A DNA stretch of 64,000 bases, from NCBI RefSeq assembly GCF_021869535.1, contig NW_026262648.1, forward strand, positions 2,666,001 through 2,730,000. Direction: 5' to 3'. Numbering within the stretch: the stretch's first letter is position 1; each line of letters opens with the position of its first letter. The notes beneath the pieces were generated by a model, which saw nothing but the letters and a program-made list of their open reading frames with translations, was not told the origin of the DNA and searched no databases. Origin of the DNA: Mytilus californianus (lineage: Eukaryota). This document shows positions 5,806 through 63,051 of this stretch, piece by piece. The translations under genes were made by a program, and so were the position numbers.

Positions 5806-6172
5806 TTAACAGTCCGTAGGTATATGATCATAATGTTCAAGATTATCTGATATTCTGAGTTTACTAGAAGCTGTATGATACATTGATATCACATGTTCAC
5901 CATTGACAGTATCATATGTATTTTGTAATTGCTTGCTATATGTATTTCTTCCATGTGCAAGTCTGTCATACTCTGTGTATGGTGTTGTATACAACCCATC
6001 TATATTCCTGTTACTTGTATCTATATGTACTTTTGCACTTTTGTTGACCACAGCATATTCATCACTGGTAATTATACCACGGACGTGTGATATTTCCGGT
6101 TCAGAAGTAAATTGAATATTGCTTGTATTACAATCTGCTGTATGTGAGCTGATTATTACTGGATTACACTTC
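5806..6172 (-). CDS. Gene 1 last exon: 121-aa cytoplasmic tail with 8 tyrosines
   Basis: cttttcag|G acceptor in phase 2 matches the TM exon; open to TAA at 5806; YAVV, YTTP, YDRL, YDTV and YDHI motifs. Confidence 0.9.
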
Positions 6173-6488
6173 CTGAAAAGAAAAATATGTCATGTTAATA
6201 GTTCTTATTTATTCTTTTTGCATGGCAAACGAAAACTCTATTGCTTATATAATATAAATTATAACAAAATATCATACTTTTTAAATTATTTCAAAGACGT
6301 AATTTGTACTTTACTTTCAAGAATATTAAGATTTTCAAATCATATAGTGAACACATGAAAGCACTGAAAGCGATATCATTTAGTATACTTTGATATTTTT
6401 TTGTAATATCGAACGCGATATCGTATTCTTCAAATCCGATAACAAAACTATATTCATTTTAATTTATATATATGGACTATGTATTAGG

Positions 6489-8860: not shown

Positions 8861-8964
8861 ACAACTGTACTACAGACTCCTGACTTGGGATAGGCACATA
8901 AAGAATGTGGCGGAATTAAACATGTCTGTGAGCGCTTAACCCTCCCCTTACCTAGGACAGTGGT
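8861..8964 (-). ncRNA. Putative type-P5 twister ribozyme, family 1, lightly mutated
   Basis: ACCACUG...GGGGAGGG...UAAUUCCGCC-ACAU/AUGU-G-CCUAUCCCAAGUCAGG; A.C mismatch in P4. Confidence 0.6.
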
Positions 8965-15479: not shown

Positions 15480-16432
15480 TTAACATAAATCACTTCAAAC
15501 TTTTACTAAAAACCTTCATAGGTACAACGATTTGTTTTTGAAGTTTGGCTGTACCTACAGATTTAGTACGGGATATCAAATCCTTAATTTTACGGTAGTG
15601 ATGTTTATAAAGCACGTAATTCAAAAATGGTACATGTCAACTTATCGATCCTCTGAATGAACTAATTAATACAGGGTATCATTTTAACACCGTAGTTAGA
15701 TCTTTGAATTTGTTTTATCGGTACTGACATTGGTGTTGTTTTTGATAATTTCAAACATAACTAAATATCATGTATTGCTTTACATTTATGAAAACTTATG
15801 GTAATACATACTGTAAATATTATGAACTTATATTTTGGCATTCTGTTCTCACACTGTTTATGACGTTTGTACACTGAAGTCGTTGGATGTGTACTAATTG
15901 ATACTTAAAGAGTATGATTTATATATCAGTTGGCATTGGCTTTGCATTAGCTTTTATTAACTGTGATTACTATTAGATCCGTACGTTGTGTCTTCTGTCT
16001 TTAAGTTGGTTGCGTTTTTTTTGTACTTCGTGCCGAATAAAAACATGTCCAACTAATTTTACAGTTTTACCATTGTCACAGGTTGGGAAAGGGTGAAGCG
16101 CTCACAAACATATTTTACCCCCGTCACAATCTGTATGTGCCTGTCCCAAGTCAGGGGCTGACATGTAATTTCGTGGTTGTCGTTGGTTGATGTCAGTTTT
16201 TTTCTGTTTTTCGTTTGTTTATTGTTGGTTTTTTTTCTTGAATCAGACCGTTGTTTTTTGTGTTTTTTGTTTGTTTCAATATTTTCACATTTTAAAATGT
16301 CGGGCTTTTATGGCTGACTATATGTTTTGGTGTTTGCTTATTGTTGAAAATTGTTAATTTCTTAAATCAACATTATTTGGACTATCTTGGATTGTTGTCT
16401 CATTTGCAATAATTCCACATCTTATTGTATAT
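15480..16432 (+). mobile_element. Second Penelope-like 3' fragment with a decayed twister-like motif (about 16070-16180)
   Basis: Homologous to 49400-50395 by eye. Confidence 0.65.
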
Positions 16433-19667: not shown

Positions 19668-20399
19668 CTAAACACAAAGGAAATATTTAAAAAATAATGT
19701 TTGTTAAATAATTTGTTGAAATGCTCTTACTTAAAACTTACCTGTTCATTTTACTAAAGTGTCAACATACATGAAAACCTAATTCGGTGGTAACTAATTT
19801 TCTTGCAAGAAGTCAATGTTAATATGTTGATTTCATGAACAACGTCTTGGTTTTTTTTTCATAACTCAACTTACTTTGTTTAAAAAATACCCGGTGTTTT
19901 CATGTTTTCCAACACTATAACTTAAGGTTATTTTTAAATCTGAACTAAATTATACCTTTCATCAATTAAATATATAAAAAAAAATACAGGTTTGTATATC
20001 ATTTTAATTAAACCAACTTAGATGGTAATGTTGAATAGTTTTACAGTCTTGTAATGACTCATCAAAGATACCAGGCTTATAATTGTGTGTATGCCAGACG
20101 AGCGTTTTGTCTACAAAAGACTCATAAAAAATAATAAAAAATGATCAAAATTGGTAAAGCGCCCTATATAAAAAATAAAAATTACTCTAAGGCGCTGTAC
20201 ATGCAGCAGGGTAATTAAAACAAATCAAAGAGAAAAACACAAAACATACAATATATCAGATACAAATACTGAAATAAAAATACAACAAAAATGCTTACCA
20301 TAGAAATAAGGTCAATACGGAAATACATATTAAAATTAAATAATAAAAATTTAACAATCTTGTCTAAAAATCATGCCAAACAGGCAGAAACCCTAAACA

Positions 20400-22790
20400 G
20401 GAATACAAAATATTGCATTAAAAGTAGATACAAAACAAGTAAAAACCCGTTCAAAAAAATGCCCAATCAAATTGTCTTTCACCGTACGTCTCCGTCCGCA
20501 CTTTTGGAACGGTAAGTAGCTGTGTAGAGCTTGAACGGAGAGATCGATGTGGCACGTATATGTTGACTAGTTCCCGATTGTAAGCAGGGCCGATGCCATT
20601 CAAAGCACAGTACACATAAATAAGTATTTTGTATTGTGGTCTGTATTGGACGGGTAACCAATGCAAATAGGCAAGTATCGGCGTAATATGTTCATGTTTC
20701 CTTGTCCTGGTGATAAGACGGGCTGCTGTACTTTGTACTTTTTGTAGTCTGTTCATTGTAGTCTTGTTGATACCGTACAGCAGAATATTCCCGTTATCAA
20801 TATAAAATAAAAAGATGTGGTATGATTGCCAATGAGACAACTCTCCACAAGAGACCAAATGACACAGAAATTAACAACTATAGGTCACCGTACGGCCTTC
20901 AACAATGAATAAAACCCATACCGCATAGTCAGCTATAAAAGGCCCCGAAATGAAAAATATAAAACAATTCAAACGAGAAAACTAACGAGATTTATGTACA
21001 AAATAATGAACGAAGCACAAATATGATATGCATCAACAAACGACAACCACTGAATTACAGGCTTCTGACTTGGGACAGGCACATACATAATGTGGGAGGG
21101 GTTAAACTAGTTTGAAGGCGCGCCAACCCTCACCCTAACCTGGGACAGTGGTGTAACAGTACAACATAAGAACAAACTATAAAAATCAGTTGAAAAGGGC
21201 TTAACTCGTCAGATCTATACAAAGCAGAAATACATCTAACAAAAACACAGAGTGGACGTGGCAGGGTACTTATACATCCCCACAACAAAAAAACACTTAA
21301 TACAGATCTGAGAGTACTCGCAGTTACTGACAGCTAGTTCAAAGCCAATAACAACAAATAATAAAAACCATGCATCTAAGACTAAAATATGTCTTATCTA
21401 AAGTCTGGATGTTACTAGACAGTTCACTAGACAGTTTACTAGTGTCTTGCATGCGGCTGTTGTTGTAAAGCTGCGAGTGCGTCCAATATTACTGAAACAG
21501 ATGCGAAAATGACAAGATTTTACTATGGCAGATACTTATCGTTCCATCGTAAGATGTTTATCAAAATATACTCCTAGGTTTTTCACGCATGATATGCTAC
21601 TTATCACAGTATTGCCGACTTTGAGTTGAAATTTGGTACACTTGCTTCAGATGTTTCGGTGTGAATAAAAATTATGATAAATAAGTTCGGTTTTATTTTG
21701 ATTAAGTTTTAACATATTTTTTGACATCCGTGAACTAATATCGGAACGACACAGTTCGAGTTTTGAAAAGTAATTCTCCCAATTGTCTAGCGGCTTGAGG
21801 ATACTTGTGTATCGTCCGCATAGCAGTGATATGTCATACCATGACGATGGCATATTTCACCAATTGGCTTCGAGAAATAGCTTCGACAGTATAATTTCGG
21901 GCCGAGCATGGAACCTTGTGGAACACCGAATGTAAGATGACATTTCTTAGATGTAGTTGTTCCAATCGCTACACGCTGATGTCTATCCGTTAAATACGAT
22001 TTAATCCACTCAAGAGCGCAACCAGTTATGCCATACGCAAATGACAGACGTTCCAGAAGAAATCTGTGATCTATGACATCGAATGCAGCGGAAGGGTCCA
22101 AGAGCACCAATACCGCTGACGACTGTTTATCTTAAGCCGCATTATCGTGATGTACTCTAGCTAATGCAGTTTCAGTTGAATGACGTGGTCTGTATGCGGA
22201 CTGAAGTGGATCACACAATGAGTTAGTCTAAGAGTCCAAATGAACATCTAGTCTCTTATCAACTACCTTTTCGAGAAGTTTTGAAATAAAAAGTAAATTA
22301 GACACTGGTCTGTAGTTTTTAAAAAATTCTGAATTAAGTCCGTATTTTTTAAAAGGAGGTCTCACAAGAGCCTGTTTGAAGTTTAACGGCACGATTTTCT
22401 CATCAAAGGATGCATTGACGATATCTGAAATTAGTAGCACTACAGCATCGGAACACTGTTTCAATAGGTTCGACGGAACGGGATCAAGCTCGCAGGACTT
22501 GCTCGGTGCCTTTTGAATGGTAGTTCGTATCTCATTATTGGTTGTGTGTTTGAATGACAACAAAGGTGTGCCAGTGAATTCAAGATCAGCATGTAGAAAT
22601 GCGATATTGTCACAATTCACCTCGTTTTGGTCTCTTAGTCCATCTCTTATTGTTACAACTTTATTGACGAAAAAATCAGCAAATGAGTTTGACAGTTCAA
22701 CATCCGAGTATGAACTTGGCAGAGGGTTTTGTTGTTGTTTACCCATATGATGTTTTGTTAGTTTAAATAACTGTTTGTTCATCAGTGACG
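20400..22790 (-). mobile_element. Decayed L2/CR1-group LINE, reverse transcriptase and C-terminal region
   Basis: KNYRPVSNL..SKLLEKVV, LLD.SAAFD, GVPQGS.LGP, YADDTQ, LKLN..KTE, RLQKVQ..AAR..T, LHWLP; frameshifted; interrupted by a repeat at about 20800-21395. Confidence 0.92.
21046..21152 (-). ncRNA. Putative type-P5 twister ribozyme, family 1, mutated (in a repeat nested inside a LINE)
   Basis: ACCACUG/CAGUGGU closing stem and UGUCCCAAGUCAG loop are intact; GCC is replaced by UCCC and CAGG by CAGA. Confidence 0.55.
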
Positions 22791-23403
22791 CTCCAATCAA
22801 AAAAGTTTTAAAAGAGGCCAAACCCTTCGTATTTCGAACAATAAACCAGATAATAACCGTATAACCTGGGATTTTCTTTTAAAACTTACGACAGCAACCG
22901 TATTACAAAGAAACAATAACATTTAAAAAACTTGATATCTTAAGACTTTATCTGGTTTAACCCCAACACATTGTGTGACTGTACCAAGACAAGCTATCTT
23001 AACCATATGTTGTTCGTTGTTGCGTTAATTTGTACATCTATTTTCTTATATTTTTTTGTAGGAATCGGATATTTTTTATATTCCTGTTATCCTGTTTATG
23101 TATAATTATCAGCATATTTATATCTATAGACCTATATCCACTCACACACACTCAAAATTAACAGATCATCTATCATAGAAGAGATTGTTTTTCCTTTCCT
23201 CAAACTGATAACAAATGTCGAATAATTATACTGTATCAATTTCAATCAACAATCTATTTTTCTACACCGGAATATTAATTGTCTACGGAAAACATCGAAA
23301 TATTAAGTTACAGTTTTGTAAGGATGTTTCATTCATCTCCGTACTAAATATACATTTGTTCTTATTCATAGAAATACAGAATGAAAAAGTATAATGCTTT
23401 TAC

Positions 23404-26282: not shown

Positions 26283-27888
26283 CTGTAATAAAAGTGTCTA
26301 TTAGAAATTTACAATTAAAACTACTTACAGTAACTGAAATCAAATGAAAGAGGTTTCTAATATTGAAACAGTGACTTCATACTGCAGACCTATATATTTG
26401 TTAGAATAACATCATATTATAAAATGGACATGAAAATGGAATGGCAAAACTTGTTCAACTGTTTACCATTATATTGTGACATATTGAATATTATAATCAA
26501 AGTAGTAAAATCAAAAATTCAGTCAATAATAGTTTGACAATTAAGAAAATACGTATGACTTAATATATACAAAATGTAGAATACACCAATACTTTCAAGC
26601 TATTAAATACCGAGGCAAAAAAAAACAATAATTATTATCAATTTACATTGCAAGATTCAATGCAAATAACTATAATAATTTTAGTATACTTATAATCGAA
26701 CGAATGGTGTACTCACTTGTATATGTCTATTTAGTCATTTAAATGAAAACTGGTTTTCAATTTTCTGATAAGATAAAATCAAATTTCAGTATCTAAAATT
26801 ATCCAAACATTGTTAATTTGCATAGTTTCAATGTTATGTCTGTTTTGAAGGTAATTTTCCCATTTCTGTAATGAACTAGGAAGTTTTAATACGATAAATT
26901 ACACACAAAAAAAAACACAACTTGCGGATTCGTTCGAGTAAAAAATCAAACGACATCTTCTGGTTACCATTCAACCTTTATCAATAGACACTATATCTAT
27001 TAAAATAGTCAGCCCATTAGATCAGTTCTTTTGAACTGGAAAAAAGTGCGGATGCTGTTTTTATCCAGAAATTTGAAGTGACATAATTTTTTTAGTTTGA
27101 AATTCAGGAATGTATCTTCCTCATACATAACATTGATTACCTGTCAGGGCTTGGCTGAACATTTTCGGTTATATCAGATCATAAGTAACAGAAATTATCA
27201 AAGATCATCCAGAGATACCAGATCTCCTAAATGACTAAAAATAATTTAGATAAAAAAAAACCACTGACGAGGATCCAGATATAGGACGGCTCAATACTTA
27301 TATGTGGAGGGGTTAAACTAGTTTTTTCTATCTACTTTGTTATGAATAAGAATGTTTTTAATTTTCTTCTGGTGTTTGTTTTAAACTAATTAAACAGTGT
27401 AGATTTGGAGTAAACGACAATTGAACAGAAACTGATCATGACAGGTAAATAAATATAGAAATTAAGAGGTCGCCATACAGCCTTCAAAAAAGAAATAAGC
27501 GGTTTTTGATAATCATATTTCACATTATTGTACTCGTATTTACAATATTTCGTAATCAAATTTCACATTATATATAATCACACGCATGTACGATATTTCA
27601 AAAGAAGACGAGAGTATATTTACAAATACAATCTCTTTTGAAAAATCAACTTTCAACAATTGATTATGTACATGTGATGTAACTTTTTACTATTATTTTG
27701 TAAAAATGTTATAATTTTTTTTGTCAGTTTTATTTATACATGTAGTTTTTTAATTAAAAATATTCCAGCTGTGTATTTTTTTAATCAGTATTTTTTATGG
27801 GGTAGGTGTGTATATTTCAATTGTGAGAAGAATTGTGAAAAAAACAAATCTGAAAACCTAATAATATTTAGGAAACTAATACCCTGGG

Positions 27889-28712: not shown

Positions 28713-29850
28713 TAAAAGAGGGGCGAAAGATACCAGAGGGACATTCAAACTCATAAATCTAAAATAAACCGACAACGTCATGGCTAGAAAAGAAAAAGAC
28801 AAACAGACAAACAATAGTACACAAAACACAACATAGAAAACTAAAGACTAAGCAACACGAATCTCACCAAAAACTGGGGGTGATCTCATTTGCTCCGGAA
28901 GGGTAAGCAGATCCTGCTCCACATGTGGCACCCGTCGTATTGCTCATGTTAGTACAAACCCGGTAAATAGTCTAATTCGGTAGGTCACATTCGTGAAAAG
29001 GGAACGGGATTGTAGTTACGACATTAGGAACATATCCGCTATCATCTGTGAAACGGATATTCCATAACGGTCAACCAACTTGTGATGGCGTCCGTAAAAT
29101 TTACGAAGGGATGACTTCACTTTGGAACTCTTGGTTTAATAGCTTCCTTGTGAGCAGCAACCCTCTATCAAGGAAATCATGATAGGAAATACAAGCCCGG
29201 GAATATCGTATCAATTGGGAAATATACATTCCGTATGCAGGCGCTGCAGGAATGTTGCTACATAGAAATGAAAAGTTCACAATTGGGAAGCTGAAACATC
29301 TCTTTTGTCGTAAAGTTTTGTATTCAACTGACCTTCATTGTCAATTTCTAGACGTAAGTCAGGATATGAGACAGACTTAACTGTATCTGTTGTATCCTTT
29401 ATCTCTAGTTCGATTAGATAGATGCGTTCAACATAGTTACCAAATTTTGATTTTTTTAGTGAGAGAACATCATCTATATAGCGGAAAGTAAAGTTAAAGG
29501 ATACTGCTAACGTCTTTTCTTTCTTCCTAAGAAGTTCCTGTATGAAGTCAGCCTCATAAGAATAAAGCAACAAGTCGGCAAGAAGTGGGGCACAGTTGGT
29601 TCCCCCGTTTGTAGAAAAACACGTCCTCCAAACGTAACAAATATGTTGTCAATCAAGAAATCAATCATCTTGATAATGTCAGTTTCAGAGAATTTTTTGT
29701 TTGAATCAGAGTGATTTTTTACAAATTAGGATTTATCCCTCCCTAAGACAAGATACTTGTATCTACGTTGGCCATTCTTTTTCTGATTCACGCCACCTCT
29801 AGAATAGGCAGTTTCACAATAACTTTGAAGCCCGGCTTTGATTTCTGATA
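28713..29850 (-). mobile_element. Penelope-like element, RT fragment and 3' end
   Basis: ADLLLYSYE, FRYIDDVLSL, TKLYDKRD, NIPAAPAYG.YISQLIRYSRAC motifs of PLE-type RT; frameshifted. Confidence 0.8.
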
Positions 29851-30119
29851 AAATTGATGTTAATAATTTAGAAAGAGGTTTCGTGGAGCATTTGAAACAT
29901 GTATATAAATGTTTTACAATAAATAAGAAAACAACTGTTATAGTCAACTTCAAGCATCCACTTCGTTTCAACTTTGGAGGATATTTGTCTCATTGGCAAT
30001 CATACCACATCTCCTTATTTTTATTTTCATATCATTATTAGCATTATCATTATTGTTTCTCTACTTATGTCTATTCATAATCATTATGTAACATTCCCTT
30101 TATGGGTCGTTGATTGGAC

Positions 30120-36039: not shown

Positions 36040-36430
36040 ATAGTTTTAATAGTTTGTTCATATGTTGAGCTGTTACACCACTGTCCCAGGTTAGGTGAGG
36101 GTGTGGCGCCCATAAACATGTTAAACTCCGCTACATTATATATGTGCCTGCCCTCAGTCATGAGCCTGTAATTCAGTGGTTGTCGTTTGTTGCTGTATAT
36201 CATATTTTTTTTTTGTTCATTGTTTTGTACATAGATTTGGCCGTCATTTTTCTCGTTTGAATTGTTTTATATTTGTCATTTTGGGGCCTTTTATAGCTGA
36301 CTATGCGGTATGGGTTTTGCTCATTGTTGAAAGCCTTACGGTGACCTATAGTTGTTAACTTCTATGTCATTTGGTCTCTAGTGGAGTGTTGTCTCACTGG
36401 CAATTATACCACATCTTCTTATTTTTATAT
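36040..36430 (+). mobile_element. Abundant dispersed repeat (5'-truncated PLE 3' region). Other copies: about 8616-8970(-), 19080-19292(+), 20800-21395(-), 23660-23885(+), 38470-38740(+), 47170-47510(-), 62060-62740(-)
   Basis: Shared end ...gttgtctcattggcaatcataccacatcttcttattttta and shared internal blocks. Confidence 0.85.
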
Positions 36431-40395: not shown

Positions 40396-42376
40396 CTACA
40401 AACAGAATACAATAAAAAGTATAATCTATAAAGCTAAGATCACACTGAACTTTAGATTACGAACCTACGAAATCTTGAAAGGCAGCTTAATATATTGATC
40501 TTTTCCTCAATATTGACACATATTAACTTCTTTAAACTATAATATATATGACAAACGTGATGATTTCAACTTTCCATTGTCAAATTCCCATTTCTCAGCA
40601 ATAAATACCCTCCACTCCACCGTTTTAAATTTCAATAAGCGTAATCTATATATAACTGGCTAATTATTAAGTCCGGGATTTCGTTAACACAAATTACTTA
40701 AAACCGTTACTAAATTATTCCATAGATACAAAGATTTGGTGCGCAAGTTTGGCTGTACCTGTTGAAAACTTATTTGAAACGAAAAAGCACATTATAATTA
40801 TTACGGGAGTGTTGTTTACTTAGCCCGGAAATTTAGATACGATCCGGGTAAACTTTTCAATCCTTTGAATAAACTTATTCTAAAAGGTTACCAATTCAAC
40901 ACTGTAATAAGATCTTTGAATATTGTTTTTATTGGTATAAATATTGATTTTGCTAAGTTATCAGTAAATTAAAGGGGCATTAGCTGTCAAATTCATTTTC
41001 ACTGATTTGACTCAAATTCTCCTTTTTGATTTAAAACATACTAAAACGTACATCCAAATTATAAAAAATCTGAAATAAACAATTTACGATGCATGGATTC
41101 GATAATATGTATCATCATTTCGTGTGTATTTTAATATAGAGACGCTATCTAATTGAGGTTATATGACCTCCGAAGACTGCCGACGGTCATATAACCCGAT
41201 ATAAACATAAACATAAATATAGATATAAATAAATAAATAGCGAACACGTGCAATTGGATTTTTCTATGTCTATTTGATTTCATATCATGGGTTAAAAAAT
41301 ACGTTAATCGTCGTTTTTACCTGTATAAGAAGGAGTTTTTGTGGATCGAATCTGTCAACCAAATGGTTTACCCATGCTTCACTTTCATATTGACATTCTT
41401 TTCCTTTTAATAGCTGAACACGTCTAGTTTATGCGTAACTCATATCTAGCTAAAGTGTTAAATTTGATGTCACATGAATACGTCTAATCTTTAATTTTAC
41501 CGTTGTGTCCTATTACAAATTGTGACAAATTGAATGAGCGTGGAATCGCATGGCGGGTGATGCCTGCAACTGCCTTGATTTTCGATCGAGTAAATTGAAA
41601 TTGGAATTGTTTGCAGAAGAAAACCTTTCATATATCGTTCCCGCAAAGTATCGTTCAAATTGGCCAGATAGCGTCATAGGAAATTGTGAAAAAATGGGTT
41701 TCAATAGGAACTATACGCAACCAATGCCACCATTAAGATCAGTGAATGGATGCAGAGAGTGTAATATGTCTTTATAAATACCTTAATGTTATACTTTTAT
41801 ATTTTCATTGCATACCTACCATCTTTTCAAAGTCTCCATAGGGGATTTTAATTGCAAGAGGTCCTAATGCCCCTCTTATATTGTCATAAATGTTCTTAAT
41901 CTACAATTATATTGTTTGAATGAGTATGTATGTGCTTAAAAAACCTTTTAACTCATTCGAATGCCTGTTTTGAGGTCTTCAGTTTATAAAATTAAGAATT
42001 TCAAATTCAGGTCAACACCTCTCATGGGGATATCCCTCATAAATCGGTAAAGTTGACAGGTCTGTCATTGCAATGGTTTAAATTCTTATATTTGATACCA
42101 ATATTTCTACAAATTTTCCATTAGGTGAAATAATGCAAGTAAAATGTGGGTTAACTTTAAACTTTCAATTTCCTATTGAAAATTGCAAGATTTTATATAC
42201 AAAATAAAAAGGAATAATAACTGATCATTCCGGGGCCTTAACATAGTCTCTAATTATCGTTTATTAGCTGAATGTTGACAATACTAGGTCATGTAACGAA
42301 TGTCATCATATTACTCTGTTGTGTCCCCGATGTCACGTACAGTTGTTTCGGCTTAATCTAAAACTGAAATACTCAC

Positions 42377-44279: not shown

Positions 44280-45616
44280 TCAAAGCCGAATATTTGAAAG
44301 CCAAGGATGTATAAGAACCGAAACAGTTGAAGAGCTAAAGCTACAGACAATAGTAACAACAGAAAGTTCCCCTTCGTCAAACGTGTCAAAGTCATTTAAT
44401 TATTGGTTGTAAAATACCACCATTATTGCCCAGAGTGAGGGGGAATAATATTTATATACATTCCGAGTCAAAGAGAGGAATTTGAATAACGATAAACAGA
44501 ATACAAAATCTCATTTGTTAGTGTAACACATTATCGCCGCCTCAAAAACTAAAACGGCAAGGGCCATGTAGATACTAAATGTTGTGTAAAATGGAATGAA
44601 TAGTTGGTGAGTATGTCGTTTTACAAATCTGAGTATTGAACAATCATTTGACTTCTGGGACGGGTTGGTTTGGGTCATCGATACAACATAGTATCATTAT
44701 TCATTAACCATTAAGCAGGAGCAGATAATGAGAAATAGATAACACACTATGATATAATTATACTATCTAGGAAAGCAAATAAAGAAACAGAATGTTACAC
44801 ACGTTTTGGTTTTTTTTTTTTTTTTTTTTTTGCTATTCTTATTGTTAATATGTAGAAATGTAGTTTTATATGATGACATTGTTTTATTTCATTGCGATTT
44901 AATTATTATTAGTTCCAAGTGATTAGAAATTGTAAGAACTTGAAGAAAACGAACAATGCGAAAAAATACTGTTGACTAATTAATCCAGAAGTCGACACTT
45001 CTGTGTTGACATGAATTATCATTGATATGGTCATATTTATAAAATAACTGATTACAAAACTTCAAAAAAGTAAGGATTTTTTAGCTCAGGTATAGATTAC
45101 CTTATCTGATTTTGGCAAAACCTTTCAGATTTTTTTTACTTTTCATGCTCTTCAACTTCGTACTTTATTTGGCCTTTTTCTGTTTTTATTCGAACGTCAC
45201 TGATAAGCCTTTGTAGACGAAACGCGAATCAGGTGTACAAAGTTATACGCCTGTTATCTTTGATGCGTTTTGTTTTAGGTAAGCGGAGCTAATGATTCTA
45301 TAATATTTGGTTGCTTTCAAATGACCAGGGTTGCTTTTATACGGCATTGGTTGTTTTCATACGAAAGGAAAGCAGATGAAGCAATTAAATGACTCTTCTT
45401 TAGGTCAATATATCATCATTTGTATGAATTGAACAACTACACTAAATATTGCGCAAATCATATTTGATACTACTACTATGGGGTGTTTAACGACCTTGAC
45501 TACCCATGAGGATCGGTATTTGAATGCGAAGTGGTTTAACAGCATTCTAAATTTGATCTTCGGATTTATAAAAAAAAAGATACAAACGGAACTTCTGTTT
45601 GTAAACATTTACTCAC

Positions 45617-46575: not shown

Positions 46576-48331
46576 AGAAAAATTGGTACTGTTTATGTTA
46601 TTAATAAATATGAGCTAAAAGTTGGTTCATGGTGAGTAATATACGAAGAGTGTCGCCTGTGTCTTTCGTGTAGTGTACGGAAGTTCTACATCACTTGAAA
46701 TTACATCTAAAGTATAGTAGGAACCATCGAGAAACACTTTCATTATGTTATAAATATCGATTAACGTTAATCAAACAAAAATTAATCCTTCATATACAAC
46801 TAGAGATTTCAATCTAGGGTTTTCATCAAGTTATTGGAACTTTTATACAATTACAATTAGGCCAACACTTTATTTCGTAGTCTTTTTCACTTGATAAAAA
46901 AATAAAATTGCACATGACATTTGTTTCAAAACCTGAAGTTATAAAAACAAATATGAGTCGTATGGGGATTAATTAAACCATTCGTCTTGCAAAAACGTTA
47001 GAATTATAGAATTCAAAATCTATAAAAGCATTATTGTCAGTGAATGTAATGTTACAAATATGAACGTCACAAGATAGTTAACAATTGACATGATTATATG
47101 AACTTATGATCTCTGCTGTTTATCTCCCTAGATGATTAGTTAACCAATTCAAACGTAAAAACCAAAGGCATTATTTATAATAAAATAATAAACGAAAAGC
47201 AAATATGACGAACAGCAACTAACGACATCCTGGAATAATAAGCTCCTGGCTTAGGATAGGCACATAAAAACGTGGCCGGATAAAACATTATTGTGAGTGC
47301 TCAAATCCTTTACATTGCACATTGATGTAAAAGCACAACATAAGAATTCAAAAGCTGTCAAAATCAGTTGAAAATTGATTGACTCCATATAACGACACGC
47401 AGCACCAAAACAAATAACATAAAGGCAAAAAACACCAAACACCGATTTAAGAGTACTCTAAGTTACTGTAAGCTAGTTCAAAGCCAATAACATCAAATAA
47501 ATAAAGCATGTTCTCCGTATCAATATTCCACCAGCACTTGCGTATAGAGTTTATACCTCTCAATTAATCATTATACGGGAGCAGTTACAGAGTCTTTTTG
47601 GACAGGACCGAATTGTGGGTTTATTATCTCGCAATTAATGTCATCCCGTCGTAGGTTCTATGGTCGTCATCAAGAACTGATTAACTGTTAAGTTGTCTTT
47701 GTCCCGAAAGACATCATACCTTGTTTTTTTGCTGTTGGTACATTTCCCCAGTTCCCAAACATGATCTTCACGAGAAAGACGTCGAGATGGAACTTCTTAC
47801 CCTGTCGGATCACTTGTGTTGATCCGTGTTTTCACATATAGCTTTTGTTATTCTAAGAAAAATGGCCCTTGTTTTCTTGTCCCTGGATTTGTATTTGATT
47901 CTTTATTTTCAATTTTGTTGATCTGCGCTTCGGTTTTCGACTCAAATGCAGTTTTACTATGCGTCACTATGGTCTTTTTTATTTCACATTTGACCAAACA
48001 TACGGGTTTGTTATCTCACAATTATTGTCATCCCTTCGTAGGTTCTATGGTCGTCATCAAGAACTGATTGATCGTTAAGTTGTCTTTGTCCAGAATGACA
48101 TCAGACCTTGTCCCTTTGTTGTTGATACATTTTCCCCGTTCCCAAACATGATCTTCAGGGGGAAGACATCGAGTGTCTTGCAGGAAGATGGAACTTCTTA
48201 ACCTGTCGGAGTACTTGCGTTGATCCGTGTTTTCTTCTTAATTTTCTCTTTTGTTAATCTACGCTTCGGTTTTCGACTCTAATGTATTTTTTTTTAAAAG
48301 TGCCTCCCTGAGTCTTTCTCATTTCACCTCT

Positions 48332-48426
48332 GACCAAACAAAGCGGGAGGTTTTGGATCCAATTAAATAAGTAATAACCCCGCCGCATATCTTATGTGCC
48401 TGTCCGAAGCCCGGAATTTGTTGGTC
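48332..48426 (+). ncRNA. Putative type-P5 twister ribozyme, third family
   Basis: GACCAAACAAA...GGGAGG...UAACCCCGCC...GCCUGUCCGAAGCCCGG...UUUGUUGGUC; a different P5 sequence that still pairs. Confidence 0.55.
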
Positions 48427-49299
48427 AATGGTACGTTCTTTTCTCGGTAGAATGTTTAGTTTCCAATATTATGATGTGGCCTTTGATTTGATTTGTTTTA
48501 CTTTTTTTCGTATTTGTTTATAGTTCCCTGACAGCATTGAAGGTCACGCGGGTACTCTGAATGTCTGTTTTATATGTTGTATTGTCTGATTTTATCTGAA
48601 TTTGTGCCTCGTCTAAAATATCCGTTCTTTTCCTCATTATTGTCAAAGATCATTTTGTGCTATCGGAACGAAAAAAATATATATCCAAAATATAAAATAG
48701 GAGATGCGAAACATGTAATTGTTCTGTAAAGTGTGTCACTGAATATAAAAGTAAGTTGAACATCCAATTGGTGAATCAAAACACTATGAAGTATAGAGCC
48801 CATTATGGACTCATCAGAGGCCAAAAATAGCAGATTCAAACTCATAAGTCGAAAATAAACTGACAACGCCATGGCTAAAAGAGAAAAATACCAACAGACA
48901 AACAATAGTACACAAAACACAACATAGAAAACTAAAGACTGAGCAACACGAACCCAACCAAAAACTGGGGTGATCTCGGGTGCTCCGGAAGGGTACGCAG
49001 ATCCTGCTCTACATGTGGAACCCGTCGTGTTGCTCATGTGAGTACAAATTCGGTAATAAGTCTAATTCGGTAGGTAATTCTAATTAAACTTTACCTTTCA
49101 ATTAAATAGTCGTTTAAAAAATCTGACATATACTCATTTAAAGCCTTCTTTTCAAATGAAAAGGGTAAACATGCTTGATATACTTATTGGAGGTTGTCAT
49201 TTCCTAAATTTAGATATTTCAGTTTTACACGGGAACTTGTGTAAAAATATTTACGACAAAAAGGACGTTTTTTCGTTCCCTTTTGTTATTTTTTTCTTC

Positions 49300-50395
49300 T
49301 GTGGGCGTTAATGTTCCTTTCACACCTTCTTACGGTGTTTATATATCCAAACTCATTCGCTATGCCCGTTTCTGTAAAGACGTTTTCGTTTTTAGTGAAC
49401 GCAATTAATGTATAACTGTTAAATTATTGGGTAAAGGATTTCTTTACCACAAATTACTTAAAATTTTTACTTAATTCCTCATAGATACAAAGATTTGGTT
49501 TGGAAGTTGGCTGTACCTGTAGAAAATTATTACAAACGGAATAGCAAATCCTAATTTTTACGGTGATGTGTTTACCGAGCCCGTAAATTTAGATACGATC
49601 CGTTTAAACTTATCGATCCTTTGAATAAACTTGTTCTAAAAGGTTACCAATCAACACTGTAGTGAATATTGTTTTTATGGGTATAAATATTGATTTTGTT
49701 ATCAATTAATTAAAACTCAACTAAATATTATTGTTATACACATATGTACCTTTACAGTCTTACAATATGTCGATACCTATATGTTTGCATTGCTCAAGGT
49801 TATGATTTCTCAGACTGTTAATGACGTATATACACTTAATCCATTGGATGTATTCTGATTGATATTTTAGTCTTAATGCATAATTTTTAAATTAGTTGTT
49901 TTTGTCTTTGAACTAGCTTTCAGTAACTGCGAGTAATCTCAGATCTGTAATGTGTGTCTTTTGTGTATTAGTTTTGTGTCGATGTGAAGAGTTAAGCCTT
50001 TTTAATCTGATTTTTATAGTTTGTTCTTATGTTGTACTGTTACACCACTGTTCAAGATTAGGGGGAGGGTTTGCCGCCTGTAAGCATTTTTAACCCCGAC
50101 ACATTCTGTATGTGCCTGTCGTAAGTCAGTAGTTTTGAATTTAGTCGTTGTTTGTTGCTGTTTATCATATTTGTTTTTCGTTTATTATATTGTACATAAA
50201 TCAGGCCGTAAGTTTTCTCGTTTGATCTGTTTAATCTCTGTCATTTCGGGGCCTTTTACAGCTTATTACGTGGTTTAGGTATTGCTCATTGTTGAAGGCC
50301 CTACGGTTACCTATTGTTAACTTCTACGTCATTTGGTCTCTGGTGGAGAGCTGTGTCATTAGCAATCATACCACATCGTCTTATTTTTACACTGA
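49300..50395 (+). mobile_element. Penelope-like 3' fragment: RT C-terminus continuing into a twister-bearing 3' region
   Basis: PSYGVYIS.LIRYARFC...HRYKDLV..GCTC, then the common repeat with a decayed twister at about 50044-50150. Same layout at about 15480-16432; ORF part alone at about 40540-40960. Confidence 0.7.
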
Positions 50396-50422
50396 ACATA
50401 AATAAAACACTCAGAAACTTAC

Positions 50423-50701
50423 CATAGACCAGCTCGTAATATCTGAGCTATAGAAGTTACCGGCTCTTGTCATACTAGTTCCGCCGGCCTTCAGAAGCTC
50501 ACAAACAAGAGTTTCGGGGTTAAAGTTGATACTAACACAAGATTCCTGTTTTTTGCAGTAACGTCCACACATTTTTAGACCTGTTTTGTCATAAATAATT
50601 ATAACGTAGGCATCTCTGTATGTATTACTTGTTAACGAGCCTACTTCTATGTTTGCTGTACAAATAGAAATTAAAATTATTAAAAAAATAGTCCTAATCA
50701 T
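50423..50701 (-). CDS. Gene 2 (secreted PAN-EGF-SMB protein) exon 1: signal peptide plus PAN/apple-like domain
   Basis: MIRTIFLIILISICTA leader; C-x3-C-x5-C-x-S-x-N-F...C-E-L PAN pattern; ATG|gtaagt donor, phase 0. Confidence 0.9.
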
Positions 50702-51414
50702 CTTAAGTTTGTGTATCCCGTTTACAGAACAAAAAAATGTTATATTTGATCTGCTCTACAGAAATAAAAGTAGTTATGGCAATCATGTATTAAGTGTTAA
50801 TTGACGCAAATTGAAAGAGAATTGGGTTCGAAGTCATTTGCGTTGATTCGAAGTAATGGAACTTGCATTTTAAAAGGAAATATACATTAGTTATCCTACA
50901 ATAAATAATTATTAGCCTTTACATTCTACTATTTCTAAAGAAACTCATAAGTGGTAAATTAAATATTAAAAATTAATATGGTTCAAATAAACCAATAAGG
51001 GAAAATAATTACTACCAATTTACTTTCCTAATGGATTTTTCGATTCGATGACTTGAACTTGTTTTTATATGCACGTAAAAAATAGATAAATTATAGCTTA
51101 TAGTTATTTGAAACAGATACATGCACAGCATCTGAATTTAAGTAAAAAACAACAAAATTGGGTTTTCCAGATATTTCCATCAATTGTTCAAATCAACAGC
51201 TTTTGTTGGTATTTTCTATCTTAAGTTTGGGGTTAAAATGAAACGTCTATTCCAAGCACTACCATTGAATGTGTTAAATTGCTAGTAATGAAATATAACC
51301 ATTTGATTTACTTATCATGAAGTTAATACTGTTTAAATGTTTCAAATAAATGGAAAACTGTATAAATGATATTTTGTCGAAAACGGATTATAGCTGTATT
51401 CTATATTCTATATA

Positions 51415-51900
51415 TAATAAAATTGAGAATGGAAATGGGGAATGTGGCAAAGAGACAACAACCCGACCATAGAACAGACAACAGCAGAAGGTCACCAACA
51501 GGTCTTCAATGCAGCGAGAAATTCCCGCACCCGGAGGCGTCCTTCAGCTGGCCCCTAAACAAATATATATACTAGTTCAGTGATAATGAACGCCATACTA
51601 AACTCCAAATTGTACACAAGAAACTAAAATTAAAAATAATACAAGACTGACAAAGGCTAGAGGCTCCTGACTTGGGACAGGCGCAAAAATGCGGCGGGGT
51701 TAAACATGTTTATGAGATCTCAACCCTCCCCCTATACCTCTAGCCAATGTAGAAAAGTAAACGCATAACAATACGCACATTAAAATTCAGTTCAAGAGAA
51801 GTCCGAGTCTGATGTCAGAAGATGTAACCAAAGAAAATAAACAAAATGACAATAATACATAAATAACAACAGACTACTAGCAGTTAACTGACATAAACTT
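51415..51900 (-). mobile_element. Related repeat family 2 carrying the intact twister motif
   Basis: End (catttccattctcaattttatt-like) differs from family 1, but the ribozyme core is shared; very few apparent lesions. Confidence 0.7.
51655..51745 (-). ncRNA. Putative type-P5 twister ribozyme, apparently intact
   Basis: GGCUAGAGG-UAUA-GGGG-GAGGG...UU-UAA-CCCC-GCC-GCA/UGC-G-CCUG-UCCCAAGU-CAGG-AG-CCUCUAGCC; P2, P3, P4, P5 and the CCC/GGG pseudoknot can all form; predicted cut between 51702 and 51701. Confidence 0.75.
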
Positions 51901-53356
51901 ATCATAGATACCAGAATTAACATTTTGTATCCCAGTCGCACGTTTCGTCTACCATAGACTCACCAGTGACGCTCAAATCGAAAAAGTCAAAGAGGCCAAA
52001 TAAAGTACGAAGCTGAAGAGCATTGAAGACCCAAAATTCCGAAAGGTTTTGCCAAATACAGCTTGTATATTGTTGATGTCATAATGTCAGTTGATTGTTA
52101 GTTTTTGTTAACGCTTATTATTTTCATGACCAATTTCATTTCACGTTTTTTTTAAACAAACTCTACTCACTGTAATTGAACATAATTGTTAGAAAGGCAG
52201 TGCAATTTACTCTCGGTTTATTTCAACATTATGTTCATCTCTGCATGTATTAACCTCTCTTTCTCTCTTTTTTTTCTTTGGTGCACGTGGTTAGATTATT
52301 ATGATGTTAAGGAGAAACAATAGCATGCAATTATTAATCATATCGAATTTATTGTCAATTTGTTTTCATCCTGAATACGTATAAAATATTTGACATTCGA
52401 AGAAAAAAAGATAAGTTATTCATTAATCTCTGTTTTTCTGTGGATTGCTTTATGTATTCAATAATGTATTTCAGAAGATAAGATTTCCAAGGAAAACAAA
52501 CAACTGTCCAATTTCATGTAAAAATTGAACTGCATGTTTAGGGACAAATAACAAATCAAGAGCGGGAACCATGCTCAATCTGATCAGACAACTTGACTTT
52601 GAGACACGTGTCAAGCTGTTTATACGAGAGAAAAAACCTTACAACAAATTTCTTAATAGGTGTCCTGTTGTTTGTGCGTGATGTTTGAACACGCAGTTTG
52701 TTAGGTCAAAATAGATTTAAGATATACGTAAGAAGGTATTATCGCTCTGTTCGTTAAAGAACTCAATTAAGGGGAAATTTATGCCATGTTTCAAAGATTT
52801 AATGAGATAATTTTATCGCTTAATCTTAAATATGGACACTTTGTTTTACGCCCTATTTCATTAGTACAACTGAAGAGCTCTGTACATTGATTTTTCCTTT
52901 TGACACTTATTTGTCTGTTGGTTTTTTTCTATCACTTTTTCTCAAGTATTCGAATGTATTCACCATTGCATTTCAGATTTTTGAGTTTTAGCTTTCCTAA
53001 CGAAGATAAATCAATAAATGCGCTTCGGAGAAACCAACTTTATTAAGTGTTATTTGTATTTGGTTGGAATGCTCCCGTGGAGTATTTTTGCCGGTAATCA
53101 TCACATGCATGATGTTGATCGTGTTTAGATGTAAGTATTTTATTGTAGTAACTCTGCTTCAGACAAACATTATGAGACGTTATTCCAGAATTTAATTAGA
53201 AAAGTCTCGTTTTGACAAAAATATTATTATGAGTTTTAAAATTCATAGAATATTCAATACACTTCAAGAAACTGGGATTTACCTTCTTCAAGAACGCTCA
53301 AACGTAAATATACTGACGTACTCGGTAGTAAATAGTTACCAGGCTTATAATTTAAT

Positions 53357-53400
53357 ACGCCAGACGCGCTTTCGTCTACATTAGACTCATCAGTGACGCT
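53357..53400 (-). ncRNA. Hammerhead motif, second family (CTGATGA-GTCT/AGAC-GAAA)
   Basis: GCGTCA-CTGATGA-GTCTAATGTAGAC-GAA-AGCGCGT-C-TGGCGT; the stem III palindrome is one base short. Decayed relatives at about 51930-51972 (-), 45196-45235 (+) and 20092-20126 (-). Confidence 0.7.
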
Positions 53401-53830
53401 CAGATCAAAATAGTAATAAAGCCAAACAAGTATAAAGTTGAAGAGCATTGAGGACTCAAAATTCCAAAACGTTGTGCCAAATATGGCTAAGGTAATCCAG
53501 GCCTGGGATAAGAAAATCCTTTGTATTTCGAATAATTCATACTTTTGCAAACAGTTAGTTTATAAGAAATGACCATATAATTGATATTCATGTCAACACC
53601 GAAGTGTTTAAAACTATTTAAAACAAAACACGTAAAAACATGATTTATTGACGACACAGATATCTACTTGACAAATGAATCCATTCAGTACATATAGAAA
53701 TTTAGGATAATATATAACAGAAGATAAAGTATGCATGCCAATGAACAGAGGGTTTCTTATTGATGCAGATTTACTCAGTACCAGTCAGGGGAAATCGACT
53801 CTTGGCTCCCTGTGTTGTTTGAGTATCAAT

Positions 53831-54715: not shown

Positions 54716-56706
54716 CTATTACAGAAATTATGCAAATCTTCAATTTACTAATATAAAACGTAGCAACGTGCAATATATCATCCAGTCCAAATAAACAAGA
54801 TGAAAAGTGTAATTCTAGTTCCGTATATTTGCAAAGTATCTTTTTTCTTGCACAATAAAAACAAATCTGCTTCCGGTTTGTTATGCATACTAGTCTGTAT
54901 ATTTCGACTTGCTTTGTTATTTATTTAATTGTCTTTCATTATATTCCAGAGGACCGTAAACAGTAGGAAACAAATAAACAATAAAGTAAGGAACATCTGC
55001 AAAAATGATAGATTTGTTGTTTTACTTTATTTACGTTTCATGAAGTTTTTACGCTGTTCTTTGCATGCATCGTTTAAAATTGCTGTTTAAGAACAACGTT
55101 ATAATTTTGTGCAAGAAGCGGACCCAGACCATAATTGCAAAAAGCTGTGATGCCGACTCTTGTAACCTTGCAAGATATTGTTAATTTACATTGATGGCTT
55201 TCAAGACATATGTTTTTGAGTAAGTGTTGAATGATTAGTTCAAGAAACACTTGCCGTGCGCGCTGAAATCCGGGTCGAACATTTATTTTTCTACATCTGA
55301 GTTAGTACGCTAAAGATGGACAGTATGTCCCAATGATACCATCATTCCAGTTGTCAGAGGATTGATGCTGACATATGAAAAACTATACATTTGGAATTTT
55401 ATGCGACTTTCATACAAATGAGAGGTTAATCTAGCTATAAAACCAGGTTTAATCCACCATTTTCTACAAAAAGGAAATGCCTGTACCAAGTCATGAATAT
55501 GACAGTTGTTTTCCATTCGTTTGATGTGTGTTTGAGCTTTTGAATTTGCCATTGTTAAGGACTTTCCGTTTGGAATTTTCCTTTGAGTTCGATATTTTTA
55601 TAATTTTACTTTTTCATATTAAATTTCCAGTTGACACATTATGTAATTGTACTAAAACAATATTGAACCTCTCTAACCAATTTGATATAATCTGATTGTG
55701 AATACTCTTTGTATGCCTTTATTGGTTATAATGCTCTCACATGACCGTTAGGATATTGCCAATAGGACTTCGAACAGTGCTCCGACAAATGTAACGCATA
55801 CAGTTTTTTTTTCATTTTTAGCTTCCCATTTCTAAGAAGTAACATACCATCTGCACCATCTTATGGCAGTTACATCTCAATTGATAGGCAATTCAGGCAT
55901 GCTCCTATTGAATGGGTGAGCTGGTGCTAACAGCAGGGTTGTGAGGAAAAACGATTGAAATCGACATTACAAAAGTTTTTTTCCGTCATCATCTCTAATC
56001 GGTGAGCGATACGACGTGTCCGTGTCTATACTCACGGAGGACATGTTTCGCGGTCAAAATATTAAGATACAAGAAGAAACAAATATGATCGGTAAACCAA
56101 CCGAGTGTCCATTCCCCTATCGTGATATTTTGACTGAGGTTGGATTTGTTTATCGGGTGATGCATGCATAGCAAGGGCCGCTTACTGTGTTTCGTTCCGT
56201 TTTGCGTTCATACGATCTCAGTTTTAATATCTTGGTCGTATATATCTAAAACGGATTTATGATTTTTATCTTCGGTAAACCACTGTTGCCTCTTTATATG
56301 TATATATATATAGGCTTTTCAAACCATATTATGGTACGAGTTAACTGATGACTAGAATCAAGAATCGCATTGAAAATACATATGTATCTCTTATTATCGA
56401 GTAAACCATACAAACAATAAAAGTAATTCATTAAATAGTATGAGCAACATTTAGGAAGAGTATATAATTCATGCTTTAGTTCATTGGATCATTATTGTTG
56501 TGATTTCCTCGGACCTCAGAATTTGTACTTACAAAGAGCAACATGACGAATGTCACTAGTGGTTTAATATTCTATATAGTTATAAGCGTACTTGTTTATT
56601 GTTTCGTCGTCTTTCTTTTTTTTTTTGCCATGACGTTGTTAGATTTCCTACGACTAGTGCATTTTGAATGTCCCTTGGTATCTTGCGCCTTTTTTGTAAT
56701 ATTATA

Positions 56707-61075: not shown

Positions 61076-63051
61076 CTGAAAAAGTGAAACGGAAAATCGA
61101 ACTTACGTTTATTAATTTTAAACCTAACATTAACTCTTAAATTCGTCTTAACCTCGTGACTTCAAACTTAAATCTTAGATTTGATTTTTTTATAAGGTAT
61201 CGGCTTTTCTTTTGCTCTTTTTTGTTTTATTAACCCTTCAACGTTTGTATTACGTTTTGGATTTTCAAAAATTATGATGGCTTCGATCTTCACTGAAGAG
61301 ACATTAATTATGGAAATTTGCATCTCGTGCAGTAACATTGGTACTTTTCGTGTTATTAAAGAAAACGAAAGTATCTTTTACATATAAATTTTGCTCATCT
61401 TTCTCAATTCTGTATTCATTTCCGTTGACAATAATCTTGGATGACGAGGTCAACAAGAATGCATGCTTATTATATTGTATAAAATATAAATTGGTAGCCA
61501 AAAGGTTTAATTGATGTGTTTGATTCATTATAGAAAGAGAGTTTGATTCCCGACGGAAAATAAAATTGTTTTAGTCAAAAGTATGTATTTCAGCTTTTTC
61601 CCTTGTGAATTGAAATCAGCAAGTTAGCCAATTCAGAATTAATAAATTTGTGCACAAGGATGACTATTTTGCCTACGTAGTTCTGTATGCATGTGTATGG
61701 AAATATATACCACCTCTCATCTTTCGATTGCTGTAGTTTTTTTAGTGATACATCTTCTGATATTTCAAAATTAGAATATAGTTGCCCCAGCAGAAACTTT
61801 TCTTAAGTTAAAAGAAAAAAATAATTCAATTTTATATCAGTGGAAAAATACTCTTCATTGGTATGTTTGCTCCTTTTGCACTGGGATTATTGATATTTGA
61901 TATGTCTTATCTAACTATAAAAAGTTGACGGAATAAACGTTCCAGAAATATATCTCTCTTGTTTGTGACAAGTATAATGTCATAAAGTTAAACAAACAGT
62001 CTGACACTTAGTTTTGGCTTATTGACTATGTTGCCGCAGGTAAAACGCATGAATATAAAAATAAGGAGACCATGAATATGCGGTACCATTGCCAATGAGA
62101 CAACTATCCACCAAAGTTCAAAAGAAGTGGATGTAAGCCATTAGACAATAGTACGACCTTCAACAATGAGAAAATAAACCATACCGTATAGTCGGCTATA
62201 AAAGAACCCGACATGAAAAAATATGAAACAATTCAATTGAGAACAAAACAATTTACAAAAATCAAATATGACAGACATGCACAAACGAAAACCACTGAAA
62301 TACATGGTCCTAACTTTATACAGGCACATGAAGAAAGGCGGGTTAAAAATGTTTGCTGGCACCATACCCTCCCCTAATCTTGGACAGTGGTGTTACAGTA
62401 CAACATAAGCACAAACTGTAAAATTCAGTTGAAATGGGCTGAACACATCAGATCAATACACAGCAGAAAAACATTAAACAAAAACACAGACCGGACGTGG
62501 CAGGGAATTTATCCCTCACAACAAAAGACACAAAGAACAGATCTGAGAGTACTCGCATTTATTGAAATCTTGTTAAAAACCAATAACAACTTATAAAGAA
62601 AGCATGTATATAAGTTCAAAATATCTATCAGTACACATCCAACAACCAATGGATTTATTGTATAGACGTCATTTACAGTCAGAGAAAAACATAACCAGTT
62701 GGTGCCAAAATAAAAGTATCGACAGATTGTAGAACCGTGAATGTTCATATGTGTATAATATATATATCTAGTATGGTTTTATACATTCCCCATTTCCATT
62801 CTCAATTTTATTTTAATTTACTGATAACGAAATTAATATTTATACCAATAAACAGTGCTGAATTGGTAAGTATGTTCTTCAATTGCATTTACTCTACTTC
62901 TCGTTCAACTCGGACAGATTTAACGTTAAAGATTAGAATTCAGAGAAAATTGGCTTTGTGTAAATCTCATTTAATGTTATATGTATTAATGCAAATATTG
63001 TAAGGTATAAAAATGAATATATTTTCAGATTTTGGAATTTAATTTGTTCAC

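Follow-up and report, generated by a model that had tools for sequence, protein, structure and literature searches.

A predicted type-P5 twister motif in the 3' untranslated region of a Naiad-clade Penelope-like element lineage of bivalves

The type-P5 twister ribozyme (RF02684, clan CL00120), for which Roth et al. (2014) is reportedly the reference, carries its elements in the order P5-P2'-GAGGG-(P1 slot)-UAA-P2-GC-(P3)-P4/L4-P5'. An RNA motif of 91 nucleotides (nt) with the same order can be read from the minus strand of a 64,000-nt stretch of the Mytilus californianus genome (contig NW_026262648.1, positions 2,666,001 to 2,730,000; the whole stretch that was analyzed, here called the window), at window positions 51655 to 51745. 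GAGGG, UAA, GC, and UCCCAAG, both pseudoknot complementarities, and the optional stems P3 and P5 are common to the mussel motif and the type-P5 twister. Unlike the latter, the mussel motif has two covarying palindromes instead of a P1 helix, ends loop L4 in U (giving a G.U pair in the 2-bp pseudoknot), does not reach the Rfam gathering score, and probably has the 3' untranslated region (UTR) of an animal retroelement as its host. The sequence, its compatibility with the fold, covariation, the element context, and conservation across species were all observed, and from these we consider 51655-51745(-) to be probably a self-cleaving RNA motif of the type-P5 twister class that belongs to one lineage of Penelope-like elements of the Naiad clade and lies in their 3' UTR.

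Twister variants lie at the 5' end of Perere-3 (RTE) non-long terminal repeat retrotransposons of Schistosoma mansoni (PMC8501958), and truncated twisters 5' terminal in RTE elements are noted in a review as unpublished data (PMC7761336). As in the mussel, a twister-class motif is built into a retrotransposon in Perere-3, where it is thought to process the element RNA. However, the Perere-3 twisters occupy the 5' end, use target-site sequence in P1, and act on cotranscripts and translation, whereas the mussel motif has the P5 permutation, a 3' UTR location, and a Penelope-like host.

Hammerheads in the pseudo-long terminal repeats (pseudo-LTRs) of canonical Penelope-like elements were reportedly described by Cervera and de la Pena in 2014 and by Lunse et al. 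in 2017. Like the mussel motif, Penelope-like-element hammerheads (PMC6765202) belong to a small self-cleaving ribozyme class, lie near the 3' end or in a pseudo-LTR, have a short palindromic feature (with dimer formation shown or proposed for the hammerheads), and occur in partial tandems, comparable to twister-bearing units 868 nt apart at a locus of the bivalve Pinctada imbricata (see below); the mussel motif differs in ribozyme class (twister) and in host clade (Naiad). Naiads are reported to lack canonical hammerheads and to dominate bivalve genomes (Craig et al. 2021, PMC8557442). The metazoan retrozymes of mussels, type I hammerheads in tandem repeats of ~350 to 390 nt (PMC7229834), are likewise abundant ribozyme-bearing noncoding repeats of a bivalve genome. 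In retrozymes, however, each tandem unit carries a type I hammerhead, whereas the twister copies are scattered retroelement tails with 5' truncations of variable extent. In the open-access literature on twisters of mussels, bivalves, retrotransposons, Penelope-like elements, and Naiads, we found no paper that places a twister in a Penelope-like element. The earlier note, made from the window sequence, had held that only hammerheads are described as ribozymes of mussel repeats, and this agrees with that literature, in which bivalves are named among new predicted twister hosts without detail and type P1 alone was studied (PMC11662667).

Architecture and fold of the motif

From 51745 to 51655, the minus strand reads GGCUAGAGG UAUA GGGG GAGGG UUGAGAUCUCAUAAACAUGUU UAA CCCC GCC GCAUUUUUGC G CCUG UCCCAAGU CAGG AG CCUCUAGCC, that is, P5 (9 bp)-UAUA-GGGG-GAGGG-(21 nt)-U^AA-CCCC-GCC-P3-CCUG-UCCCAAGU-CAGG-AG-P5', which is the order of a type-P5 twister. 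Its parts, all on the minus strand, are listed with the evidence for each in parentheses; R1 is our own covariance model of the module.

51655-51745: whole type-P5 twister-like motif, 91 nt (sequence; Rfam Twister-P5 match; R1, 87.7 bits; strict descriptor)
51737-51745: 5' strand of P5, GGCUAGAGG, partner of 51655-51663 (9 perfect pairs; P5 sequence differs in other copies, pairing kept)
51733-51736: linker UAUA, 5' of the P2 3' strand (sequence)
51729-51732: 3' strand of P2, GGGG, partner of CCCC at 51696-51699 (GUGG/CCAC in Pinctada copies)
51724-51728: GAGGG, with GGG at 51724-51726 as pseudoknot partner of the loop CCC (aligned to GAGgG of the Rfam model)
51703-51723: P1 slot, with palindrome 1, UGAGAUCUCA, at 51713-51722 and palindrome 2, AAACAUGUUU, at 51702-51711, which includes U-1 (constrained fold; shuffles)
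51700-51702: U-1, A1, and A2, with the predicted scissile bond U51702/A51701 (aligned to UAA of the Rfam model)
51696-51699: 5' strand of P2, CCCC (Rfam alignment; constrained fold; copy comparison)
51694-51695: GC, complementary to GU at 51670-51671 and 5' side of the 2-bp pseudoknot, G.U plus C-G (AC with GU, A-U plus C-G, in Pinctada copies)
51682-51693: P3 hairpin, CGCA-UUUU-UGCG (fold predictions; copy comparison)
51666-51681: P4, CCUG/CAGG, with loop L4, UCCCAAGU, at 51670-51677 (aligned to cCGGUCcCAAGCCCGg of the Rfam model; GCCG/CGGC in Pinctada)
51655-51663: 3' strand of P5, CCUCUAGCC, preceded by linker AG at 51664-51665 (sequence; constrained fold)

The structure as transcribed in the earlier note, with a 9-bp closing stem, P2, P3, P4, and complementarity of CCC and GAGGG, was indeed present in the minus strand, and P3 (GCA/UGC) can be extended to CGCA/UGCG. 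The order of elements and the 9-bp P5, within which both ends of the motif fall, bear out the P5-permuted topology, and the scissile position had been placed correctly at U51702/A51701 (nucleotides 44 and 45 of the 91 nt). Of the conserved core positions, all those open to a check were present (U-1, A1, A2, GAGGG, GC, and UCCCAAG). Assessed by complementarity alone, both pseudoknots can form, between GGG 51726-51724 and CCC 51676-51674 and between GC 51695-51694 and GU 51671-51670. The terminal loop L4, UCCCAAGC in twisters, is UCCCAAGU closed by CCUG/CAGG in the motif, with the final C replaced by U. By homology, G51728 can be assigned to the position of the general-base guanine of twisters and a catalytic role is predicted for it (PMC11662667, PMC5408937). 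The observation of a type-P5 twister-like motif at 51655-51745(-) is confirmed.

In a scan of 121 nt, Rfam Twister-P5 matched 51666-51732 (23.1 bits; E = 0.003). GAGGG, UAA, GC, and GUCCCAAG fell on invariant positions of the model, base pairing was retained in P2 and P4, and the P1 slot measured 21 nt, compared with 20 nt in the model. This model leaves the pseudoknots and the P5 stem unscored and penalizes the P3 insert. A strict descriptor (P2b-GAGGG-N-NAA-P2a-GC-N-P4-UCCCAAGY-P4') matched twice in the window, at the motif and at 8879-8948, compared with once in 100 shuffled windows (0.01 per window). The minimum free energy (MFE) of the 91-mer was -37.8 kcal/mol, a value reached by 0 of 200 shuffles (z = -3.8). 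The twister secondary structure without pseudoknots amounted to -30.7 kcal/mol, and a fold in which pseudoknot and catalytic nucleotides were kept unpaired consisted of exactly P5-P2-P3-P4 (-32.6 kcal/mol).

The P1 slot is occupied by two self-complementary segments, one just after GAGGG-UU and the other ending with U-1. Palindrome 1 is UGAGAUCUCA in the motif and GGCGCGCC, UUGGAUCCAA, UAGCUA, or GUGCGCAC in other copies; palindrome 2 is AAACAUGUUU in the motif and AAACUAGUUU, AAACCAGGUUU, or AUCCAGGAU elsewhere. Their sequence varies among subfamilies and genera (including the Pinctada loci L001 and L007) with self-complementarity kept, i.e., they covary, and such palindromes arose in only 1 of 2,000 shuffles of the 51655-51745 copy and in 0 of 2,000 of the copy at 21058-21141. 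They may form small hairpins or dimer contacts, and by analogy they would be comparable to the stem III loop, likewise palindromic, of the hammerheads in Penelope-like elements, which cleave as dimers (PMC6765202).

Copies in the window and in Pinctada imbricata

BLAST and R1 together located approximately 10 copies of the module in the window, of which 51655-51745 is the best preserved and the only one with P2 (4 of 4 pairs), P4 (4 of 4 pairs), both pseudoknots, GAGGG, and UAA all intact. Between distant subfamilies, the twister block is the sole part that ordinary BLAST aligns. The R1 matches were as follows; from 50055-50136 onward, each copy was characterized by R1 and copy comparison.

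51660-51738, minus strand: match to the copy under study (R1)
8873-8954, minus strand: sister copy with nearly intact core, 3 of 4 pairs in P2, and an A.C mismatch in P4 adjoining the loop (R1; descriptor)
50055-50136, plus strand: sister copy with decayed core, 3' of the open reading frame (ORF) remnant 49259-49579 (+)
48337-48420, plus strand: sister copy of another subfamily, 3' of ORF remnant 47513-47682 (+), with P5 CCAA(A)CAAA/UUUGUUGG
21058-21141, minus strand: sister copy with decayed core and P5 CAGG/CCUG plus CCACUG/CAGUGG
36087-36168, plus strand: sister copy, decayed
16079-16161, plus strand: sister copy with dead core (AAGGG, UUA)
62303-62381, minus strand: sister copy, decayed
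47239-47320, minus strand: sister copy, decayed
55413-55501, plus strand: distant copy with weaker match and P5 UCAUA/UAUGA

Across 13 copies, standard pairs filled 87% of cells, compared with 76% in shuffles and 33 to 52% with slid partners, and 8 of 13 pairs changed on both sides, compared with 3.9 in shuffles, in an alignment that was fitted to the model and is biased toward the structure. The changes are nevertheless evident from the sequences themselves. Most copies have A-U as the second pair of P3, whereas 48337-48420 has G.U and 51655-51745 has G-C. P5 is represented by at least six unrelated sequences that still pair: GGCUAGAGG/CCUCUAGCC, CAGG/CCUG plus CCACUG/CAGUGG, CCAA(A)CAAA/UUUGUUGG, UCAUA/UAUGA, AUCGG/CCGGU plus CGAGACC/GGUCUCG, and AUUGG/CCGGU.

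The loci fetched for Naiad-like proteins were those of Pinctada imbricata (assembly in PMC12506671), and R1 found the module in them 7 times. The best copy, L007:5237-5327, reads GUGG GAGGG ... UAA CCAC AC ... GCCG UCCUAAGU CGGC, with a P3 of 6 bp that is unrelated in sequence and with a P5 in two parts; its Rfam score was only 11.4 bits. Compared with the copies of the mussel window, P2, P3, P4, and P5 were all altered with pairing retained, GAGGG, UAA, and UCCUAAGU were kept, and the 2-bp pseudoknot changed in a compensatory manner from GC/GU to AC/GU. The twister block and ~50 nt after it were the sole part of the 3' UTRs that aligned between mussel window and Pinctada, in keeping with selective constraint on the block. 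Covariation, both among the copies and across two bivalve orders, supports the predicted stems P2, P3, P4, and P5, and the wider result would be that in at least two bivalve orders a Naiad lineage of Penelope-like elements has a P5 twister in the 3' UTR. The twister reading as such is well supported by sequence, structure, covariation, and conservation, with activity as its prediction.

At L007, positions 4643-6361 hold two direct units of ~864 nt (82% identical), each with a twister copy, 868 nt apart. This partial tandem could yield a unit-length RNA if both ribozymes cut.

The host retroelement

The motif lies in what is probably a 5'-truncated retroelement tail of ~490 nt (51403-51891, minus strand). 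Its identity with two other tails, 20785-21249 and 49920-50186, was ~61% over 457 to 487 nt. The 3' end of the tail adjoins a TA-rich run, and TA runs are the reported target type of Naiads (Craig et al. 2021, PMC8557442). All twister-bearing tails share a terminal block ~300 nt 3' of the twister. The tail at 51403-51891 has no ORF remnant of its own and is homologous to tails behind ORF remnants of a Naiad lineage, here called B. On the same strand upstream of the copies starting at 50055 and 48337 are such remnants (49259-49579 and 47513-47682, respectively) with the YxDD region of the reverse transcriptase (RT) and a characteristic C terminus. The former is closer to lineage B than to lineage A (P0152-like copies) and shares the longer C terminus of lineage B.

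In a Pfam scan, the ORF pieces of the window gave no match, and the element class was therefore assigned through full-length relatives. With the RT piece 29280-29648 of the window as query, a very large protein family was reached, whose full-length members of ~1,000 amino acids (aa) have GIY-YIG at ~130-224 and RT (RVT_1) at ~638-851 (P0152, P0167, and P0221). Naiads have a permuted architecture of N-terminal GIY-YIG and C-terminal RT, with a DKA motif and a CxC linker motif (Craig et al. 2021, PMC8557442). An N-terminal GIY-YIG domain and a C-terminal RT were found in the relatives and not in the truncated copy at 51403-51891. DKG was changed to DKA in ITPADKASNN (Pinctada protein P0026) and PADKAANN (lineage B at L001); the lineage B element of L001, whose alignment spans residues 90 to 986, also contains VIYVI...YVGET (GIY...YVGET) and, N-terminal to GIY-YIG, a cysteine-rich CKEKRCGMC. 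In Pinctada, the module sits behind the divergent lineage B (30 to 45% identical to P0152), 208 nt (L007) or 276 nt (L001) from the end of the ORF.

Naiad-type RT ORF remnants were also seen at 29125-29893 (-), which was 54 to 60% identical to P0026, and at 40532-40930 (+). Locus L006 (an assembly in ENA) has an intact Naiad ORF of 999 aa, followed ~230 nt later by a TA/CA microsatellite at 5725-5870 and no ribozyme; this TA/CA run gives many spurious matches to microRNA families.

The earlier note had placed the motif in a young repeat. This claim did not stand: no near-identical copy was present in the window (~61% identity to relatives), and the host is instead probably the tail of a Penelope-like element, diverged and truncated at its 5' side. 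As a trace of copied cleaved RNA, we sought copies whose first nucleotide is at the cleavage site; the two candidates, 22955-22991 and 27269-27333, were rejected, since both retain sequence upstream of the site. Four twister-bearing tails of mixed orientation (47239-, 48337+, 50055+, and 51660-) lie within 4.5 kb (47239-51745). Nested and inverted clustering has been described for Penelope-like elements, and the tails at 47239-51745 fit such clustering.

Directly upstream of the twister-bearing tail is a hammerhead-like repeat of ~165 nt (51895-52058), with a hammerhead-like motif at 51937-51975 (-) that scored 19.2 bits (Rfam type III gathering score, 48.5) and has the core CUGGUGAG, with G for the conserved A6. 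Copies of this repeat are present at 53332-53483, 45111-45270 (core CUGAUAAG), 20057-20124, and 22779-22822. That hammerhead and twister form one unit was rejected, since copies of the hammerhead-like repeat elsewhere have no adjacent twister and the homology of the tail stops at ~51891.

Predicted cleavage, alternative explanations, and meaning

Cleavage, its site, and a role in retrotransposition are predicted from the sequence. In full-length elements, the motif would be ~210 to 290 nt 3' of the stop codon and ~300 nt before the 3' end of the element. A minus-strand transcript would fold with both pseudoknots formed and then cut itself between U51702 and A51701, leaving an upstream product that would end in a 2',3'-cyclic phosphate and a downstream product of ~300 nt with a 5'-OH and the 3' terminal region of the element. 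In partial tandems of master elements, such cuts would yield unit-length RNAs. Processing to unit-length RNA is a role proposed, and never proven, for the hammerheads of other Penelope-like elements.

Several results weigh against an active twister at 51655-51745, besides the bias of the covariation alignment. The earlier note had proposed a comparison with the Rfam twister-P5 model; the match that this gave in the 121-nt scan was below the gathering score (37.6), its E value rescaled to the whole window and all families was ~1 to 2, a whole-window Rfam scan at gathering thresholds gave no match, and an Rfam E-value scan of 601 nt (51400-52000) reported no twister and only a weak hammerhead-like match upstream. 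The blanks of the wider scans are a filter effect and no proof of absence, because the 121-nt scan recovers the same 23-bit match; given the subthreshold score and the rescaled E value, Rfam alone is therefore insufficient for the twister case. The strand that follows GAGGG and the one that precedes U-1 cannot pair into a P1 helix, and 51723-51703 stayed open in the constrained fold. The last nucleotide of L4 is U, compared with a conserved C. In the unconstrained MFE structure, GGGUU pairs with AACCC, by which catalytic and pseudoknot nucleotides are sequestered, and this structure is 7 kcal/mol below the twister structure in a comparison that leaves pseudoknot energies uncounted. The other window copies all have damaged cores, with 8873-8954 close to intact, so most genomic copies are dead. 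Downstream of 29125-29893(-) and 40532-40930(+), the twister module was absent even with filters off, and at least two Naiad lineages therefore coexist, one of which bears the ribozyme motif. It was absent likewise downstream of lineage A, i.e., P0152-like copies in Pinctada and 29125-29893 in the window, and of the intact Naiad of L006; the motif is therefore lineage specific and not common to all Naiads.

Part of this would be explained if 51655-51745 descended from a twister and were itself inert or never transcribed, a fossil and the luckiest of many decaying copies, in which the missing P1 or the competing fold would block cleavage. This is unlikely, although it is the alternative that survives best. 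At least 8 sister copies of the window have broken cores, there is no P1, the competing structure is lower in energy, and the copy is 5' truncated, without an ORF and without a close relative in the window; Penelope-like-element hammerheads, moreover, cleave poorly alone (PMC6765202, PMC11167929). However, all positions known to matter are intact in the copy, and the energy gap omits the pseudoknots. In large-scale tests of natural twisters, 94% were active, P1 was reported to be dispensable and its imperfections to be without effect, and G.U wobbles in the pseudoknots were tolerated; mutation of A1, of A2, or of the general-base G was harmful (PMC11662667).

Very improbable is a twister look-alike, a 3' UTR element for protein recognition or the priming of reverse transcription, with its conservation due to RT binding and not to catalysis. 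Such an element would suit the location of the module in a 3' UTR, where templates for target-primed reverse transcription are recognized, the subthreshold Rfam scores of all copies (23.1, 14.2, and 11.4 bits), and the two palindromes, which are foreign to twisters. The conserved unpaired nucleotides are nevertheless exactly the catalytic and pseudoknot nucleotides of twisters, neither pseudoknot has lost its complementarity (in one, a change between genera is compensatory), and the elements follow exactly the order of a known twister permutation. To chance resemblance in AT-rich repeat DNA we give almost no credence: the Rfam E value is insignificant once scaled to window or genome, but the descriptor control gave 1 match in 100 shuffled windows, a 9-bp P5 exactly flanks the core, and chance is already disfavored by conservation of the module, with covariation, in ~10 window copies and another bivalve order.

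A self-cleaving twister-class motif is our preferred reading, and it bears on the role of ribozymes in Penelope-like elements. Hammerheads occur in nearly all Penelope-like clades, but their cleavage was unneeded for insertion in vitro (PMC11167929); the very successful Naiads, reported as devoid of canonical hammerheads, had raised the idea of ribozymes as mere passengers (PMC8557442). If a twister is conserved in the 3' UTR of a Naiad lineage, the niche would have a second ribozyme unrelated to the first, and the role would become testable by comparing lineages with and without the twister. The rare P5 permutation would thereby gain an abundant family from animals, in which P1 is naturally replaced, and annotators of mussel and pearl-oyster genomes would have a name for one of the commonest conserved noncoding blocks. 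It is possible, though we stop short of calling it probable, that this Naiad lineage recruited a P5-permuted twister, with P1 replaced by two self-complementary segments, at the 3' region or pseudo-LTR equivalent to that of the hammerheads, that selection has kept the motif from a time preceding the divergence of Mytilida-like and Pteriida bivalves, and that it may act as a dimer like the hammerheads of Penelope-like elements. If this is true, the presence of two unrelated ribozymes in one niche would be an argument for self-cleavage as a requirement in the life cycle of Penelope-like elements and not a passenger.

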